From: Oopsacas minuta
Lineage: Eukaryota; Animalia; Porifera
Length of the DNA stretch: 64,000 bases
Assembly (NCBI GenBank): GCA_024704765.1
Contig: JAKMXF010000340.1
Span: forward strand, 1 to 64,000
Direction: 5' to 3'
Shown: piece after piece, positions 4,214 to 52,864 of the stretch
Numbering within the stretch: the first letter of the stretch is position 1
How the letters are laid out: each line of letters opens with the position of its first letter
Translations under genes and position numbers: made by a program
Notes under the pieces: generated by a model
What the model was told of the DNA's origin: nothing
The model's database searches: none
The model's input: only the letters and a program-made list of their open reading frames with translations

Positions 4214-7200
4214 TCATAGAGCTGTAGTCTCACTAGGTTGTCTCTGCATCTAATAATTATATAAGATGACGTCATAAATATAAGAATAAACATATATATC
4301 AGGATTCCCAATAATTACCTTAGGGCTCTTGACAACTTTCTCTTTCTTAATCTTAGGACTCTCTATAGCATTGTTATTATTACTGTTAGGTGAGAGATCT
4401 GTTTGAGTCTCAAACTCTCTCTTTTGTTGTTTAAGAATTTCATTTTCTTCCTGTAATTCTCTAAACTTGTCAGTCATAACATTCAATTCCTGTAAATAAT
4501 AAGAATAAATACAAAGTTATGTAGAGTTGTATCGAAAATATTCAAATAAAATTTCCAGAAAAATATGAAAAATATAGAATTTTCGATGTAGCATATTTTC
4601 GGTAATTTCGCAATTATTTACAGATATTTAAGATAATATATAACCTGATGGAGTTGTACTGTTAAATCAGTTTGATTAGTCCCATCAGGGTTAGCTTGAT
4701 TAGATTGTAGCAACTTTATCAACTAAATACCGTATATAGAATAACAACAAGTAAACAAATAACCAACAAACAAACAAACAAACAAACAACTAACATGCTG
4801 TGCGTCAGCTAGATCTTTCTTGTATCCCTGAATAATCTCAGACATTCCAAACAATGACTAAATTACAAATAAATAAAACATCAACAACAACAACAACAAT
4901 ATATATAATGATAATTACGTCATTCTCTGCTTGCAAGCTGTTTGTCCGTTCCATCTGATCAGAGCTCTGTCTCTGAGTGCTAGCTAGATCATGTTCTAGT
5001 TTATCTTTCCTCTGAGATATACTGTCCATTTGGTAGGTAAGCTCCTGGATCTCTGAATCTCTCTTCTACACAGATAACAATTAATAATGACGTCATTCTA
5101 TTAATACTAGAGTGGATCCTCCACAAACGAGGAATTTTGCAGATAATTACCTTGAGTGATTTCTCCAATTCTGGTACTACAGATTTCTTCAGAGATTCAG
5201 TCTCTTGATTCAAATTCTAATCAATAATACATTGAATATACAAAGAATAAATAGCGTTAAAAAGATTAAACTAACCTCCAATAGCTGCTGTGAGTTAGAC
5301 AATTCATTTTCCTTCTCTCCAATAATCATTTCCTTATCTAGAGCTCTCCTCTGTTCTACACTTAACTCTCCTTTAAGTCTAGTGAATTCCTGCTCTACCT
5401 GATTTTGTAGTAAAAGAATTTCTTCTTGCTATAAGCAAATAATGTATTCATGAATACTCAACAGAGTATAAGGAAATACAGTCAAATCCCGAAATATAGC
5501 AATTAACATATAACAGGAGCTGACTGTAGTTAAAAAGATATGACAGGGATCTCGCTTACCGTCTCCTTTATAGTCTTCTTCAACGTTTCATTCTCCTCTG
5601 TTTGTATCTTATCCCTAACTAATAAATCCTTTACTTTCTCTCTCTCCTTTTCAGCCTCTATACCAGACTCATTCAATGCCTCAGTATTGGTTTTATTATC
5701 TTCCTCTAATCTGTATAAGTAATCAGTAGCAGCTCCCTTCATCTTACCCAGCCAATCCTCAAAATCCTAAATACAGTATGTACCGGTTATAAGGACCTAC
5801 TTGGGAGTAGCAATATATGTTCTTATAACCGACATACATATACATAAATATATGAGAACCTTATTCAGGAGGATGATACTCATATATGTTCTCTATTTCT
5901 ATTCAGAAATATAATAAATTACCTGTCCATGAGCTCGTAGATTGGGGAATATTTGTCCGGAGAATCCCTAATAATATGGAGAATGACGTCATAATATTTA
6001 GAATTATATAGTAAACCAGGGATATCAAATTTCTTAGACAAAAGTATAGTCAACTCCCGTAATATAGAACAGGAATACCCACTTATAATTATATACGGCT
6101 TATAAGAGAAGTTTCGATATAAGGGAGTTGACTGTAGCTGTATTTACAAAGTATGTTATACTAAAATACCTGTATTTGTTGGTGTGTAGATTTAGAATCT
6201 TGTTCGGCAGATTTACGTGCGTTATCAATATCATCGTTAATTTTCCAAACATTCTCACGTAATTCCTAAAACAAAAAACAAATTATAACAAAGAATAAAA
6301 CAAACTAATTTACTCAAATCTTACATTATTCTTCTTTTTGAATGTATCTAATCTTTCTTGAATAATTGTATTCGTTTCTAAACTCTGAGCTAATTCTTCC
6401 TCCTTCTTTTCCAGCTTAGATTCTAGCTCTGTGAATGAAAGTTTCATCTCCTGTAAAATATAAGCGAGTGTATATTTCCATGAATTAGCGAGTTAGTAAT
6501 ATGATGACGTCATAAATAATGGTATAATGATAATGAAATGCCGCCTGCCCACATGCTTAGACGTACATCATGTGGAGCTTAACAAGTTACCAACCTCTAT
6601 AGTAGCTTGCTGTATCGCATGATTACTAGCTAGATCAGCTACAGACGAATCATCTAAACCAGAACTTTCATTTCTAGCCTGTAGGATATCATTCTCAATT
6701 TGTAGATCCTGTGTCTTCTGTTTAAGATCTTGAAACTCATTCTAAACAACACAGGACATAAATAAAGAATGCCCATATAAGTATGAATTATGACGTCATA
6801 ACATACCATTATGTCTCCTATATCATTCACTTTCTGTTGTGACTTCTCTACTAATGCAGTTAATCTGTTTATTTGAGTCTCTTTCTCTGATAGCTCAGAT
6901 TGCAGCTGTTCTACTTCAGTTGCAGGTACACTATAGATAATATACAGGTAGGTGAGTATAACAAATAGGATAAGGTGATGATAATAGAAGATGTATGACG
7001 TAACGTATTTCCTGTAATAAAATTTAATAATAATAATGTGGTTGTGTGTAAACTATCAGGAAATTCACAGTTAGAAATATTCGCAAATATTAACCTTTCT
7101 TGTCTTAGTTTAAACATTTCAGAATTTAGAGATTTAATAGAATCTTCCCAATCTTCTAGTTGAGTATTCAGCTCTCCTATCTTCTCCTCATACTCAGTAA

Positions 7201-10200
7201 TTTTATCATCTGTCACTAACAAATAAGACAAGAGATAATTATATTGAATTCTTGAATTGTACAAATATGGCCAAAAACCGGCAAACTAACAAAAATAATA
7301 TCGTCAGTTATATAGAAGTATTAACGCGGTCCCTAGAGTTTCGAAATAACAGGAGTTGACTAGATTACTGAACCATGCATTTGTTCCAAACAAACTCGGC
7401 TATATAGAATTATTCATGGTTCAGTAATACTATAACAACTCTGTGTTATATTTAATAATACCAGATGTCATTACATAATATACACAACACCATAACCTAC
7501 CATTCTTACTCTGGTCATCATTTAGCTTATCAATAGCAATCTGCTGTTGTGTAATACATTCTTGTTTCTGTTGTAACTCATCTTCCAATCTATACTTCTC
7601 CTTAGCTTCCTTCTCGCTGGCTTCCAATGAGTTTTGTAGAGAACAAATCTTATCATTCAGCTCTCGTTCAATGGAAGGATTCGAAGGACTAAACAAAATA
7701 ATTACGAGTTTCTTAATCAAATCACTTAAGGAAATTTACCAATTTTGATAGAATTCTGAAGGTGGGAGAAAGTTTAAGACAAAGATTGGATTCGAACCCT
7801 TGTGGGCGCGAAGAGCCTAATACATTTTCTGGATATTAGGGTGGAATTGAGAAAAGTGTGAGATCCCGGGAAAATATTGAAAAGCTCAGGATTTGACACA
7901 AGAAAATCCCAGCAAATTTGTTGGTAAGTATAGATCACAAAAATACGGAAAATATTCTTACCTATTAGATTCTATCTCTTTGAATTGTCTCTCCAATTTC
8001 TTACAACTTGTAGTAAGACTAGCAATACTAAGATTTGCTTCATTCAATTCTTCTCGCGTAGCATCTCTGTCTTGTAACATTCTAGCTTTCTCAACCTCCT
8101 GGCAACGAGTTGGATAATAGGAATGTCATATACCTAATATATGAATACTTACTTTCTTATCTAATGTAGTTTGCATTTGTTGCAGTTGAGCATCGTGCTG
8201 AGACTTTAAAGCTGAGTGCTGAGATCTCCTATAAGTTAAGGAAATAATAAAATAATTCTAGAATATTCTATTCTGGCGCACTTACATTGTGTCTATAGAT
8301 GATTTCCGTCTCTCCAATTCCTATACACACAAATACAAAGATAATATCGTAAATTCGTAATATAAACCAAGAGATATAATAGTCACTAATCCATAGGGCT
8401 CTGCCCGCATGGGTTCGAATCCCATCTTTGTCGTTAACTTTTCGCCGAATAACACCAAATATCCAAATATTAAAAATTTTATGTATGAATACAAACCTCT
8501 TGCATTCGAGAGACAGTATTAGCCTGTGCTGCTGCTGTATTTTGAAGTTGTTGATTTATCCGAGTGTTTTCATTTTTCTAACAAACAAAGAATAACAACA
8601 AATCCATAAACTAACAAATAAACAACTTACATAGGAGTTGATTTGTTGATTAAATTGCACTTTGGTATCATTCAAATCAGTATTGAGTCTGTTAATCTCG
8701 TTACTATAAGAATACAAAGTAATGTAGATCCCTAACAACCAGATCGGATAATGGAATGCTCTGTCAGATATACAATCCTCATACACAAGTGTAAGAACAG
8801 GTCTGTAATATCATCATACAGATATGACGTAATTAACTTACTCTTTCAAACGGTTTTCAGCACTCAAATCTTTATACTTTGTCAAAACTAATAAATACAA
8901 CTAAATTAATATTCATTGTAAAAATATCCATGGTTGTATAATATTAAACTTACTCTCGTCTTTCTCTAAATTGAGTTTATTAACTTGATTAGTTAGAAAG
9001 TGGAATTGATCAGATTCATGTCCATTAGTCTAACACAAAATAAATTATATAAAAATGGCTATTTCTCATTGACAACGCAAAAATTTAAGGAATTTCAATC
9101 ATACCAAAAACATAAATATAATCTAACCTTAGTCCAGTTAATATCTCCGTTTTGATTATTTGTAGGAACTTCTTCTAGACAAATAAACTCTGTAAAAAGG
9201 ATGAAAGTATAAGATAATTGGCTTCTGAAAGCATTTCGTGAATTCTCAGAGATTTAATCAAACTTCAAATTTCAAAAATGTTTGAATCACGCAAACAGTT
9301 AATCTCTATAAATAATACCTTTCTTGGGTTTAGTCTTAGATTTTCCCTTCTTCTTAACAGGAGCATCCTCTACAATATACTGGGGGCTAGACACAACAGG
9401 TAGGGACTCTGTAATTGGCGGAATTACTTCACCAGTGACTACAATCTCTTCTGATAGGTCAGGAGGCAAACTAGAAGTCTCCGTTACCTATAACGTACAA
9501 ATAACTAATAGCACGAGACTATGTAATACGCACACGTGTATATATATTAATTGTAAGATAAGATACTTGTGATTAGTTAAACTAATTTATTGACTATGTT
9601 TGGAAATGATTAGATGCAAAATAAATTCACAAGCAAGTAATAGTATAGAATAGTTCTAACAGATAATTAATTGTCAATTCCATCGGCTAATTGTTATAAA
9701 CGACAAGAATTTTATTATTATAAGGCACTGTTAATATCACTTGTTTCAGCTACACCCTCTAAGCATACATGCATGCGGGATTTTATTATCTCATTATTAT
9801 GACGTAATCAAAATACATAGTGGCCAATCCATAAAAATTTCAATGACTTAGAAATATGTTAAGCATGTTAAAAGAGGTCTGTGAAGCTAAAATCACTACT
9901 ATTCACCCGTTAGTTAGTAAATATACTGTGCATAGTTAACACTTTGGGCATATTCGTACAATTTGAGACTTCGAGGTAAGCGGGTAGTTTCGATATATCC
10001 GCTAAGGGAGTGAAATGTAATAGAATTTGACTGAAAAAATAGTGAAATAATGACAATATTTATGCGGCAAATAAACTCGAAACAATTTTGATACTAACAG
10101 TAGCATAAATACCTGTTTCTTAGTCTTCTTCTGTTTGGTATTTGGTTTGGGAGATATCTTCTCGGGTAAAATTATAGTAATTTCTTCTTCAGAAGTAATT

Positions 10201-47951: not shown

Positions 47952-48710
47952 TTAATATAACTTTCCAAACATGTACATAATCATTAGTAGCACCAACAAA
48001 TACCAAGCATTATACTTGTACACACTAGCATTAGAGCTGTAAGGCGTATCACTAGGCCGATCTGTTGCTGTAGCGCTGGCACACAAGCCTTGATTGCAAT
48101 AAGGAGCACTCTCAGGGCAATGAGAACAACCATCACCTGAGATATAAGGCAAATCTCCGTCCATTGCTGAATAATACAAGCACAATATTAGAACCCCATA
48201 GTACTCATTGGATTCGTAATTTCTAATTGTACAGTAGTTGTATGCACAGCCAATTTGGCTGGAGTTAGCCCATGCTACTTGAACATAGTTCTCACAAACT
48301 CTAGGAGTATAACCGCACTCATTATCATACATATTATAATACTGTCCTGAATCAAACCATTCTTCAACAGAAGTAAGGAAAGTGGTTATACTTGGCTCAG
48401 TAATATCTTTGATTAACCTTGAGGCATAACCGTATGTAAGACCGTTGTAATCCAGACTCAAAGATGAACTTTTACAATCCTTTACTTTGTAATCAGCTAG
48501 TAGTTGTAGTGAAGTGCTCCAGCTGATCTCTTTCATATTACTAGCTTGTGGTTGTACTTCTCTTCGTAGTTGGTTATGTGCACGTACTAGTATAGTCTTG
48601 ATAAGGTGGTCATCGATGGAATATGATTCTGCAGGAGCCAGTTTGAAAATTACGAATATGGAGAATATTAGAAACTTCATAACCACCCAGAATGGAATCA
48701 TATACCACAA
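47952..48710 (-). CDS. CAP/SCP superfamily protein (PI16/GLIPR1-like) with signal peptide and C-terminal hydrophobic (GPI/TM) tail
   Basis: HNQLRREVQPQASNMKEISWS, YVQVAWANSSQIGCA, and the hinge PYISGDGCSHCP...CNQGLC. Confidence 0.9.
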   Translation of the reverse strand: MWYMIPFWVVMKFLIFSIFVIFKLAPAESYSIDDHLIKTILVRAHNQLRREVQPQASNMKEISWSTSLQLLADYKVKDCKSSSLSLDYNGLTYGYASRLIKDITEPSITTFLTSVEEWFDSGQYYNMYDNECGYTPRVCENYVQVAWANSSQIGCAYNYCTIRNYESNEYYGVLILCLYYSAMDGDLPYISGDGCSHCPESAPYCNQGLCASATATDRPSDTPYSSNASVYKYNAWYLLVLLMIMYMFGKLY

Positions 48711-49182: not shown

Positions 49183-50172
49183 ATGGCTTCGGAGGCTAGT
49201 GAAGATGATTATGACATTCGTAAACTTATACTAAGCGACGTTGCCGTATTCGAAACTGTTATAGAATGGAATTACCAATTGGATTTCATTCATGACACAA
49301 AATGGGCGCTAAAAATCACCTCAAGTAAACAAAATACAAAACCAATTCCTTCAGATATACCGAATGAACTAAATCTGTTCAAACCAGGTATGCGGATCGA
49401 AGCAATTGACAGGGTATACCCACAATATGTTTGCGTGGCCAGCATTTTACGAGTTATTGGTGATAATGTATTAGTATTTTTTGATGGTTGGTCGAATGCA
49501 TATAACTACTGGTGTCGATATGATAGCCCAGAAATCCGTCCAGCCGGCACAGCACAAAAATTGAATATGCCATTATGCCCACCATCGAGTACGACCCCCG
49601 GGAGCAATTCAAACCTAGAATGGAGAAAAGGTGGAAGTGAATGGAAAGGTTATCTGGAGGTCAAAGGTGCGATAGCTGCGCCGGATCATATATTCGGGAA
49701 ATTAGTCATCCCAGAAGGCAGTGACAAATATTCAGATTTAGCCGAGAAAAAAGATCCAAAATCAATCGTGACAGAAAATGGTATGTTGCCATTGTTTGAG
49801 AACTGCGGACGAATTGTTATGAGGGAGAAAATAAACTTTTCCAAATGTCCTGTCAAAATCAGAGACAGGCTAAAAACTGCAAGAAGATGCATTGTGTGTG
49901 GCGGCCCATTTCTTGTCGGTTTTCATGGCATACTTCCATGGACATCTATCGAATGGATTCGTAGCAAACCTTTCTCAAGGATGAGCATATTATGCTCTGT
50001 AAAATGCGCAGAGAATTTCACCATCTACAATTTCCCTTTTAATGATGACAAACAACAAACTGAACTATCCAATCGTCGTTATTACAATTTTCATAGAACT
50101 TTCTACAACTCAGAACGTAGAGATTTAAAAATCCAGAATAGTCATGCAGAGAGTAAAGGGTTTCGCTATTGA
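49183..50172 (+). CDS. Intronless MBT-repeat protein with a C-terminal BC-box-like and Cys-rich (CxxC...CxxxC) module
   Basis: FKPGMRIEAIDRVYPQYVCVASILRVIGDNVLVFFDGWSNAYNYWCRYDSPEIRPAG is an MBT repeat. The C-terminus reads PLFENCGRIV...CPVKIRDRLKTARRCIVCGG...LCSVKC. Confidence 0.8.
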   Translation: MASEASEDDYDIRKLILSDVAVFETVIEWNYQLDFIHDTKWALKITSSKQNTKPIPSDIPNELNLFKPGMRIEAIDRVYPQYVCVASILRVIGDNVLVFFDGWSNAYNYWCRYDSPEIRPAGTAQKLNMPLCPPSSTTPGSNSNLEWRKGGSEWKGYLEVKGAIAAPDHIFGKLVIPEGSDKYSDLAEKKDPKSIVTENGMLPLFENCGRIVMREKINFSKCPVKIRDRLKTARRCIVCGGPFLVGFHGILPWTSIEWIRSKPFSRMSILCSVKCAENFTIYNFPFNDDKQQTELSNRRYYNFHRTFYNSERRDLKIQNSHAESKGFRY

Positions 50173-50605: not shown

Positions 50606-52864
50606 ATGTCTTTATCCGGTATCTACATTCTCGATCTGAAAGGCAAGCCTCTAATATCTCGCAGCTATCGTGGAGACACTGAAACGAATATTATCGATAA
50701 ATTCATCAGTCTGGCTTTAGAATCAGAAGAAGAAGGGATCGGCCAGCCTATAGTAACTCATCTCAAGCATACATTTGCTTACATAAAGTATAACAACCTG
50801 TATTTGGTGGGTGTAACCAGACGAAATGCTAATGTAGCGATTATATTCACATTTCTGCACAAATTGCGTGAATGTTTTGTAGGTAAGTTATGTAAGCAAC
50901 TTCGTTATCAAGGACTTGATTCTCCCTTGAAAGTTAGCAAGTATGGGAGCATATAAATAAGTTTATCACTTAGTTGTATGAGCGGACCATGGATATAGTA
51001 TACTCAATAGAACTCTCAGAATTTTAGCATTGGCACTTGTCAGGACCCGAGAAATACTTCTCACAAGTGACAGCAATGGTCTGACAAATACAGTAGAACC
51101 TCGTTAATACGTACACCAAGGGACCGTCGAGGTTGTACTCCTTATCCTGAGTGCGTATTAACCGGAAATTCGTATTAAATGTGTTCGTATTAACGCGGTT
51201 TCACTGTAACAACTTAAAATACTGACACTGCTCTAAATATCCATCATTTCTTATAGAATATTTCCATGAGCTAGAGGAAGAGAGTATCAAAGACAATTTC
51301 GTTCTCATTTACGAGCTATTAGATGAGTTGATGGACTTCGGATATCCCCAAACAACAGAGACAAAAATTTTGAAGGAATTTATCACTCAAGAAAGTCACA
51401 AACTAGTTATCGCTCCGCGTCCTCCACCAGCTGTTACAAATGCTGTTTCTTGGAGAAAAGAAGGTAGCATATTTCATAGATTTTAGCTTGGCATGAACTT
51501 TTCAATTTGTCTGAATGAAATGAAAATTTCCACTAATTTCACTTTTACTTCCTTACATGTTAATACTTGTATTATAATTCAATAGGTATCAAGTACAGGA
51601 AGAATGAATGCTTCCTAGATGTAGTAGAGTCTCTGAATCTTCTCGTTAATGCTAGCGGCACTGTGTTGAGGTCTGAGATACTAGGATCAATCAAACTGAA
51701 GGTTCACCTTACAGGAATGCCAGAATTGAGGTATATACAATGCTCTTTTTAGAACAGCGTTTCCCTACCTTTCCACCCATGGTCCCTCTTACAAACACTG
51801 CAATACAACTTTGAGATCCTGTGGGCAGTGTGCCCTATGCTATCGTTAATGGACCACCAAGGGGTCTGGACCCAGGTTGGGAACCGATGCTTTAGAAATC
51901 ATCTAGTTTCTAACTGCTATAAATGCGAAATAATAGGACTTATACTATCATTATTTACGTATAAATTTACCTTATAGGTTGGGATTGAATGACAAAGTTA
52001 TGTTCGAGAACACAGGTCGTAACACAAACAAAGGTGTTGAATTGGAAGATGTAAAGTTCCATCAGTGTGTGCGGTTATCACGGTTCGATGTTGACCGTAC
52101 TATCTCTTTCATTCCACCAGATGGAGAGTTTGAATTGATGTCATATCGTTTGACAACACCTGTCAAACCAATCATATGGATTGAGACATCAGTTGAACGT
52201 CCGGGTAGAAGTAAAGCTGAGCTGTTGTTGAAAGCTATTGGTCAATTCAAGAAGAAATCTACTGCGAATAATGTGGAGATACTTGTACCAGTCCCCAGTG
52301 ATGCGATCAGCCCCAAGTAAGTGTTATTGCTGTGCTACTTTCATTTCCATTTCGGATGTATATATTTTCGTTGTGTTGTCAGATCATGAACAGAATACTT
52401 TGACCTTGGCATGAACCTTAATCTTTGTGGATACATCAACTGGCTTCCATTGTGATGCTGTATTTTCGAAAGCATTTACTCATATACTGCGGAATTATAG
52501 AATTTCACCCATTTTACTGAGTTATTTATTTCATTATGGTTGATTATAAAATGATTTTCTTAGGTTTAGTTGTCCTTATGGCATAGCTACTTATCGACCT
52601 GATCTATCCGCAATACGTTGGATTATAAAGTCATTTCCTGGTGGCAAAGAATACCCTCTCTATCTTCGCTACAACTTACCCTCCATCCAGGCAGAAGACA
52701 CGGAAGCAAAGGCCCCAATAACCGTGAAATTTGAGATACCATATTTCACTACATCTGGTATTCAAGTTCGTTATCTTAAAATTATGGAGAAGAGCGGTTA
52801 TCAAGCTCTACCCTGGGTGAGATATATAACACAAAATGGAGACTATCAAATTCGCTCAAACTAG
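50606..52864 (+). CDS. AP1M1: AP-1 complex mu subunit, multi-exon
   Basis: MSLSGIYILDLKGKPLISRSYRGD, DNFVLIYELLDELMDFGYPQ, GVELEDVKFHQCVRLSRFD, and a last exon with YQALPWVRYITQNGDYQIR. Confidence 0.96.
51093..51208. mobile_element. TA-flanked MITE with TIR CAGTAGAACCTCGTTAATACG / CGTATTAACGCGGTTTCACTG, in an AP1M1 intron
   Basis: Imperfect terminal inverted repeats with TA flanks; ends related to family A. Confidence 0.65.
51755..51889. mobile_element. hAT-type MITE (family D) in an AP1M1 intron
   Basis: TIR CAGCGTTTCCCTACCT / AGGTTGGGAACCGATG with near-perfect 8-bp flanks TTTTAGAA / CTTTAGAA (a TSD length typical of hAT). Internal sequence is shared with 44140-44220 and 59925-60065. Confidence 0.75.

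Follow-up and report, generated by a model that had tools for sequence, protein, structure and literature searches.

Can a methyl-lysine reader and the docking surface for a cullin ubiquitin ligase be carried by one short polypeptide? The question is raised by an open reading frame (ORF) at 49183-50172 (+) in a 64,000-nucleotide stretch of the genome of the glass sponge Oopsacas minuta (contig JAKMXF010000340.1 of GenBank assembly GCA_024704765.1, positions 1 to 64,000 of the forward strand; this whole stretch is referred to as the window). The encoded protein joins one MBT repeat to a tail in which a BC-box motif, a Cul2-box motif and four cysteines follow one another. Both halves are already known, the one from MBT readers and the other from BC-box/Cul2-box tails; it is for their fusion that no description was found in the literature. 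We consider it rather probable that the gene encodes a one-piece substrate receptor for Cullin-2, and perhaps also for Cullin-5, with a single-MBT methyl-lysine reader.

The gene and its MBT repeat

The ORF encodes 329 amino acids plus stop, is intact, and is the sole long ORF at this position in the ORF list. Because only ~3 codons are open upstream of the ATG and orthologues start at the same methionine, it is read as a single exon. Orthologues of 329, 327 and 331 residues are present in three other glass-sponge assemblies (75, 72 and 62% identity), and in all three the gene order DUF747 / CAP(-) / MBT-tail gene / AP-mu / DSPc is kept. Across the four orthologues compared, synonymous sites are saturated (proportion of synonymous differences, pS, 0.72-0.89) while the nonsynonymous proportion (pN) is 0.13-0.24, with the MBT and cysteine parts being the most constrained (pN about 0.08-0.17). 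Besides these four, ten near-identical intact copies are found in other assemblies; overall, the ORF is uninterrupted and constant in length across at least 14 sequence variants from ENA and Logan assemblies, which fall into 4 clusters at 90% identity. The low pN against saturated pS, the intact orthologues and the kept neighbours therefore identify 49183-50172 as the complete coding sequence of a real gene under strong purifying selection.

Analysis of the protein against Pfam identifies one MBT repeat (PF02820) at residues 70-136 (49390-49590, +), with an E value of 2.2e-20 and 73.1 bits against a curated cut-off of 22. Nothing besides this repeat is detected by Pfam in the 329-residue protein at E <= 10, and no SAM, C2HC or FCS domain is among the matches. 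The best match in the PDB is repeat 2 of L3MBTL1, the methyl-lysine-binding repeat (70.5 bits, versus 46.6 for repeat 1 and 49.9 for repeat 3). The alignment extends to residue 171, into a W..YL....AAP..F arm that forms the start of the next repeat in L3MBTL1, in agreement with the original prediction of one clear MBT repeat with partial flanking MBT sequence. Pfam, the PDB alignment, AlphaFold2 (AF2) and Foldseek together place the repeat and both flanking arms at residues 58-175 (49354-49707, +). Here, the AF2 predicted local distance difference test score (pLDDT) is 71-88 over the MBT, and Foldseek matches L3MBTL1/3 at E ~1e-10.

The residues of the methyl-lysine pocket are intact. Counting along the PDB alignment, D76, F100, W103 and Y107 (49408-49410, 49480-49482, 49489-49491 and 49501-49503, +) correspond to L3MBTL1 D355, F379, W382 and Y386, which form the pocket in the L3MBTL1 structures. 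The cage aspartate and aromatics, proposed earlier as the point to check, are thus all retained; D76, F100 and W103 are invariant among 11 family members and Y107 is nearly so. L3MBTL1 D355 and N358 mutant entries are among the Foldseek structure matches. These features suggest that the MBT half reads mono- or di-methyl-lysine.

The sponge MBT is closest to the L3MBTL1/3 type, and shares the fold, the aspartate and the aromatic cage with L3MBTL1, SCM and SFMBT. These proteins carry two to four repeats together with SAM and C2HC or FCS domains, whereas in the sponge protein a single repeat stands without any of those domains. MBT readers are characterised by two to four interdigitated repeats; here, there is one repeat plus the arm of a further one. 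A canonical multi-MBT gene with SAM is encoded separately in the Oopsacas genome (at C310), and the gene at 49183-50172 is therefore not the sponge's L3MBTL/SCM orthologue.

Ahead of the MBT lies an N-terminal region (residues 1-57; 49183-49353, +) that is conserved in orthologues and modelled by AF2 with low confidence. It contains an EW..Y motif (E28 W29); as an EW..(D)Y motif at residues 28-31 (49264-49275), this is conserved from glass sponges to Oscarella and further relatives.

The tail and its LRR-type relatives

The tail begins with a BC-box, PLFENCGRIV (P203-V212; 49789-49818, +), recognised by its conservation and by its fit to the BC-box consensus [STP]Lxxx[CSA]xxx[VILA], and located at the start of a predicted helix (204-215). 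The Cul2-box, CPVKIRDRL (C222-L230; 49846-49872, +), starts 9 residues after the BC-box, contains a predicted helix (224-230), and has the pattern hydrophobic-P-x-x-hydrophobic-x-x-x-hydrophobic. It ends exactly 5 residues before the first cysteine of a four-cysteine module (49888-50007, +), which consists of CIVC (residues 236-239), G246 and CSVKC (residues 271-275). The arrangement of C236, C239, C271 and C275 (CxxC-31-CSxxC), the invariance of the cysteines and the low pN indicate a module that is presumably zinc-binding. All three elements lie where the original prediction placed them, and they stay in register in divergent relatives.

Across the family, the pattern is: [STP]-L-x-E-x-C-x-R-x-hydrophobic; 9-10 residues; hydrophobic-P-x-x-[IVL]-x-x-x-hydrophobic; 5 residues; CxxC, G and CSxxC. 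The register is kept in the glass-sponge orthologues and paralogues, in Oscarella lobularis, and in relatives that share only 29-36% identity. In an 11-sequence alignment, L204, R210, P223, C236, C239, G246, C271 and C275 are invariant and E206 is nearly so; a few family members have T or V at BC-box position 6, or F at position 10. The BC-box match is weak by itself, because the pattern is present in 14% of shuffles of the 329-residue protein. Adding a Cul2-box at the right distance reduces this to 0.56%, and the combination of BC-box, Cul2-box and CxxC was found in 0 of 20,000 shuffles. The LPxP of a Cul5-box is absent, the box reading [CL]Pxx[IV]xxx[LI].

The firmest link between this tail and other proteins comes from a profile (A3) for which seven MBT tails, and no other sequences, were used. 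A search with it of 1.84 billion representative proteins gave 10 matches at E <= 1e-3; nine carry MBT, and the remaining one is a leucine-rich repeat (LRR) protein from a metagenome, P0013, with the same tail at its end (whole-library E 1.1e-4). In a comparison of A3 with whole P0013, hhalign aligns 79 columns that extend from the BC-box to CSxxC, at a probability of 96.9% (E 2e-10). When the P0013 tail was searched against the sponge genome, the best match was the ORF at 49183-50172 (E 6.7e-5). P0013 and all family members retain each of the four cysteines. The BC-box signature is shared by P0013, human LRR1 and a sponge LRRC58-like gene, as is the 5-residue gap between the Cul2-box and the first cysteine.

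Named LRR-type adaptors were reached by two further routes. A structure search of the ESM Atlas with residues 196-295 gave LRR-type clusters in 8 of the 10 rows listed (three LRRC58, two LRR1, two LRRC69 and one other LRR), with template modelling scores by query of 0.48-0.57. In a search of A3 against the PDB, the top match, and the only significant sequence match, was human LRR1 (7PLO chain O, a CUL2-LRR1 receptor) at E 0.0029. This alignment is in register throughout: TLLESSARTI, IPFHLCQDL, the 5-residue gap, a cysteine cluster, G, and a terminal FCSLGC.

The sponge LRRC58-like gene (L037:693-1142 and 1246-1827; G000:C321), read exon by exon with the exons unjoined, encodes LRRs followed by a BC-box, a Cul2-box and cysteine-containing motifs. 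Its tail runs SLVELSCYII, 10 residues, IPKYLTNYL, 5 residues, CDNPNC...DFCGRYR...EYLCNYC. Counting back from DFC..Y.R......YL reproduces the residue numbers given for human LRRC58 in the papers, both for the residues needed for Cul2 binding (A267 in the BC-box; L282 and L290 in the Cul-box) and for the C-cap residues (D317, F318, C319, Y322, R323, Y329 and L330). Because the residue spacing fits the human numbering, this gene is taken to be a probable LRRC58 orthologue. Against its tail, A3 aligns in register over the BC-box, the Cul2-box and the first cysteines (hhalign E 0.0011), and a joint alignment leaves L, E, P and three cysteines invariant.

Other searches were uninformative for the tail. 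Foldseek with the full-length model recovered MBT structures only; an ESM Atlas feature search gave no usable match for the tail or for that of P0013; and the P0013 tail, used in a word search, retrieved P0013 itself only. In a PDB search with P0013, LRR matches swamped the results. With the full-length (A4) and wider-tail (A5, A6) profiles, an LRRC58 chain never surfaced in PDB searches, though 9T7V is present in the database. Among the rows of the tail-model Foldseek search is 8PQL, a CUL2-ELOB/C-FEM1C complex (29 columns, E 9.3).

Taken together, the profile, structural and register data assign the tail to the module of the LRR1/LRRC58/LRRC69 type. The LRRC58-type adaptor tail proposed originally is thus supported by P0013, by the nearest predicted structures, and by collinearity with the sponge LRRC58-like tail. 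The link is firm for P0013, and those to the named proteins LRR1 and LRRC58, each weak when taken singly, are mutually consistent. For these named adaptors the LRR1 match and the ESM Atlas structures favour the proposal, and the fragility of the former, the short LRRC58-like alignment and the AF2 tail model, described below, count on the other side.

A proposed receptor and the alternatives to it

Two known receptors provide the closest comparison for the tail. According to the LRRC58 papers, Elongin B/C and CUL2 or CUL5 are bound by this protein through its BC-box and Cul-box, CUL5 through a Cul2-type box, and loops on both sides of the cullin-binding region form a zinc-bound structure. LRRC58 (an Elongin B/C-CUL2/CUL5 receptor for the cysteine dioxygenase CDO1; 9T7V) has the same tail order and spacing as the sponge protein: BC-box, ~10 residues, Cul2-box, 5 residues and cysteine cluster. 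The two differ on the substrate side, which is an LRR solenoid in LRRC58 and an MBT in the sponge protein, and in cysteine pattern (Cx4C...C...CxxC in LRRC58 versus CxxC...CSxxC). The LRRC58 hairpin and C-cap sequences cannot be aligned with the sponge tail. LRR1, the CUL2-LRR1 receptor that ubiquitylates the CMG helicase, has a tail in register with the sponge tail, and its clusters are represented among the closest predicted structures. Its substrate side is LRR (plus PH-like) rather than MBT, and its first knuckle is CxC...C, not CxxC.

For the MBT half, the relevant comparison is the mammalian pathway in which L3MBTL3 acts with the cullin-RING ligase CRL4-DCAF5 in lysine-methylation-dependent proteolysis of DNMT1, E2F1, SOX2, EZH2 and others (PMC5915600, PMC10889763). 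There, an MBT reader of mono- or di-methyl-lysine hands methylated non-histone proteins to a cullin-RING ligase, and the sponge protein would do likewise. In mammals, L3MBTL3 (three MBT repeats, C2HC and SAM) and DCAF5 (CUL4) are separate proteins, whereas in the sponge one MBT is fused to a Cul2-type module. On the best-supported reading, the sponge protein would be a fused counterpart of the L3MBTL3/CRL4-DCAF5 pathway.

If this is correct, the reaction likely involves: capture of a mono- or di-methylated lysine of the target in the MBT pocket (D76 with the F100/W103/Y107 cage); docking of the BC-box helix (203-215) on Elongin C; contact of the Cul2-box (222-230) with the N-terminal domain of Cullin-2; and ubiquitylation, by Cullin-2/Rbx1, of the bound methylated protein or of a neighbour on chromatin. 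A flexible linker of ~25 residues would join the MBT to the tail. It corresponds to residues 176-202 (49708-49788, +), where pLDDT is below 50 for residues 181-201, and is missing from C66-type paralogues (described below) and Oscarella-clade proteins. The four-cysteine module, five residues beyond the Cul2-box, would bind zinc and fix the geometry, as in LRRC58 and LRR1. Methyl-lysine binding, Elongin and cullin binding, zinc binding and target degradation are each proposed here from likeness to these systems.

Two of the partners that this mechanism would need, Elongin C and Cullin-2, are encoded in the Oopsacas genome. Elongin C is present as a protein of 113 residues (E 1e-48 to the human protein). 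The cullin genes were searched as single exons, which were left unjoined; on this basis C222 encodes Cullin-2, with one exon matching Cullin-2 at E 2.4e-61 versus 4.8e-42 for Cullin-1. C354 corresponds to Cullin-3 and C133 to Cullin-1, and two more cullin loci lie at C322 and C210.

Several observations weigh against the one-piece receptor. On the MBT side, the position of L3MBTL1 N358 is occupied by Y79, and by Tyr, Phe or Asn in the family; in addition, we know of no MBT protein that works with a single repeat. In the tail, the BC/Cul-box stretch shows the weakest constraint apart from its motif positions (pN 0.23-0.39), evolving faster than the MBT and zinc parts, and P223, invariant in the 11 single-unit members, has no counterpart in the first units of two-unit paralogues, which are without the Cul2-box proline. 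The LRR1 match is seen with one of four profiles and is lost with A4, A5 and A6. The hhalign match to the LRRC58-like tail has a probability of 21% and covers 44 columns, in the first half of the tail only. The full-length AF2 model and the tail model are both of low confidence (mean pLDDT 56-58), and searches with the tail-only model (pLDDT 55.8) yielded no match below E 3.6 in Foldseek and none at Z >= 2 in VIA-align wide.

Two alternatives, both of which we regard as unlikely, assign the protein a different role. In the first, the tail binds Elongin B/C without a role in degradation, and tethers Elongin BC, or a non-proteolytic cullin ligase, to methylated chromatin. EPOP, a BC-box protein that links Elongin BC to Polycomb complexes, provides a model for such a function. 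MBT proteins are classically chromatin or Polycomb factors, and the closest MBT domains here are those of L3MBTL1/3/4 and SCMH1. Of the literature containing both 'MBT' and 'BC-box', neither item describes a protein of this kind, and one is a review on BC-box use in the Polycomb repressive complex PRC2, which fits a tether. The Cul2-box is harder to accommodate: it contains an invariant proline at a fixed distance and equals the BC-box in its degree of conservation, which argues for cullin recruitment. Likewise, the ubiquitin ligases in which LRR1 and LRRC58 use their homologous tails are active.

In the second alternative, which appears about as improbable as the first, the cysteines of the tail form a diverged finger of the FCS/MYM (TRASH-like) type known from SCM, PHC, L3MBTL2 and SFMBT. 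On this view, the product would be a small Polycomb-type reader with no cullin link, and the stretches that match a BC-box and a Cul-box would be ordinary helices. Consistent with this proposal, the second knuckle, [LV]CSxxCxxx[FY], resembles the FCS motif and is aligned with it by hhalign in two Scm proteins, and Foldseek ranks the L3MBTL2 FCS finger (2W0T) first for the tail model, at a non-significant E of 3.6. However, no Pfam zf-FCS (PF06467) match is obtained in five tails, even at E <= 10, and hhalign of A3 against the two zf-FCS-carrying Scm proteins gives 2.8% and 1.4%, over 15-19 columns that comprise [FL]CSxxCxxx[FY] only. The spacing from CxxC to CS, 29-36 residues in most units, also speaks against it, and an FCS finger leaves unexplained the upstream helices, their fixed spacing, and the 79 columns shared with an LRR protein. 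For the zinc knuckle itself the FCS and LRR-tail readings are compatible, because FCSLGC also forms the end of LRR1. A likeness to an FCS knuckle is thus possible for the second knuckle, and the whole tail module is not an FCS finger. The FCS/MYM finger of an SCM or L3MBTL orthologue, named in the original prediction as the finding that would overturn it, was therefore not encountered, in keeping with the lack of SAM and C2HC.

The weakest alternative, that a multi-repeat MBT gene has left the ORF as a decaying or non-functional remnant, could draw on its single repeat with the arm of another and on a broken tail fragment elsewhere in the genome (C33), and is rendered highly improbable by the intact ORF of constant length in its many variants, the saturated synonymous sites beside low pN, the conserved neighbouring genes, and the retention of the architecture in Oscarella.

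Should the one-piece Cullin-2 receptor be correct, the gene would represent a natural single-chain version of the reader-plus-ligase pair formed by L3MBTL3 and DCAF5 in mammals, and would support, from an independent evolutionary source, a role of methyl-lysine as a degradation signal. It would further offer a compact natural template (about 250-330 amino acids) for methylation-dependent targeted degradation tools, and an entry to the little-studied LRR1/LRRC58/LRRC69 tail as a portable module for different substrate-binding domains.

A sponge family and the surrounding locus

The gene is one of three paralogue types in Oopsacas, the others being a 254-residue gene on C66 and a 487-residue gene on C15. 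The latter contains two complete MBT+tail units in one ORF (L003:1426-2889; G000:C15:~72835-74298). In the first unit of the C15 type, the Cul2-box proline is lost (IGHSLYEKL) and Glu replaces the cage Asp. The two-unit form is kept in other glass sponges (P0005, P0014), and the two units are sisters in the tree, making the internal duplication old.

In the same tree, the glass-sponge types group together, and on the other side lie the Oscarella lobularis protein XP_065844248.1, annotated as 'uncharacterized protein', and several ENA/Logan proteins. Oscarella lobularis has two MBT+tail genes in tandem (L027:5001-6343 and 6432-7724), each with several introns, versus the intronless glass-sponge genes. 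When the family profile was used in a word search, no named protein of MBT+tail architecture was recovered, the next matches being ordinary L3MBTL and SCMH1, and a literature search found no paper describing a fusion of MBT with BC-box/Cul2-box. The original statement that this architecture is unfamiliar from described proteins agrees with these searches. The family has so far been seen only in sponges, in two named classes (glass sponges and Oscarella); the original term 'lineage-specific' is better replaced by this description.

This distribution allows a broader proposal, which we advance more tentatively than the function of the single gene. Sponges may hold an old family of single-chain 'methyl-degron' receptors (in at least two classes, with three paralogue types in glass sponges) in which a methyl-lysine reader is wired to Cullin-2. 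Methylation-dependent proteolysis would then date to the base of animals, in a form unlike L3MBTL3-DCAF5-CUL4 in cullin and architecture.

Weaker genome matches were set aside. A fragment at L013:1447-1569 (-) (G000:C33:~201817-201977) resembles the tail of the second C15 unit (TCNICNKHYINGW...) and is interrupted by a stop; it is probably a dead copy. The match at C44 corresponds to nothing, and that at C310:530719 to a coiled-coil protein.

Beyond the four-cysteine module, a C-terminal extension (residues 276-329; 50008-50169, +) is modelled by AF2 with low confidence. It contains an aromatic motif at N297-Y308 (50071-50106), N-x-x-ar-ar-x-ar-x-R-x-ar-ar, where ar is F or Y, which is common to Oscarella P0011, P0006, P0008-P0010 and P0012 and is missing from the C66- and C15-type paralogues. 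In LRRC58, the extreme C-terminus has a regulatory role, and a connection with the motif at residues 297-308 is possible at most.

Neither adjacent gene shows an apparent functional connection with the MBT gene. Upstream lies a gene for a CAP/SCP-domain secreted protein (47952-48710, -), and downstream a spliced adaptor-complex mu-like gene that starts at 50606 (+). The G+C content of the window is 32-38%.

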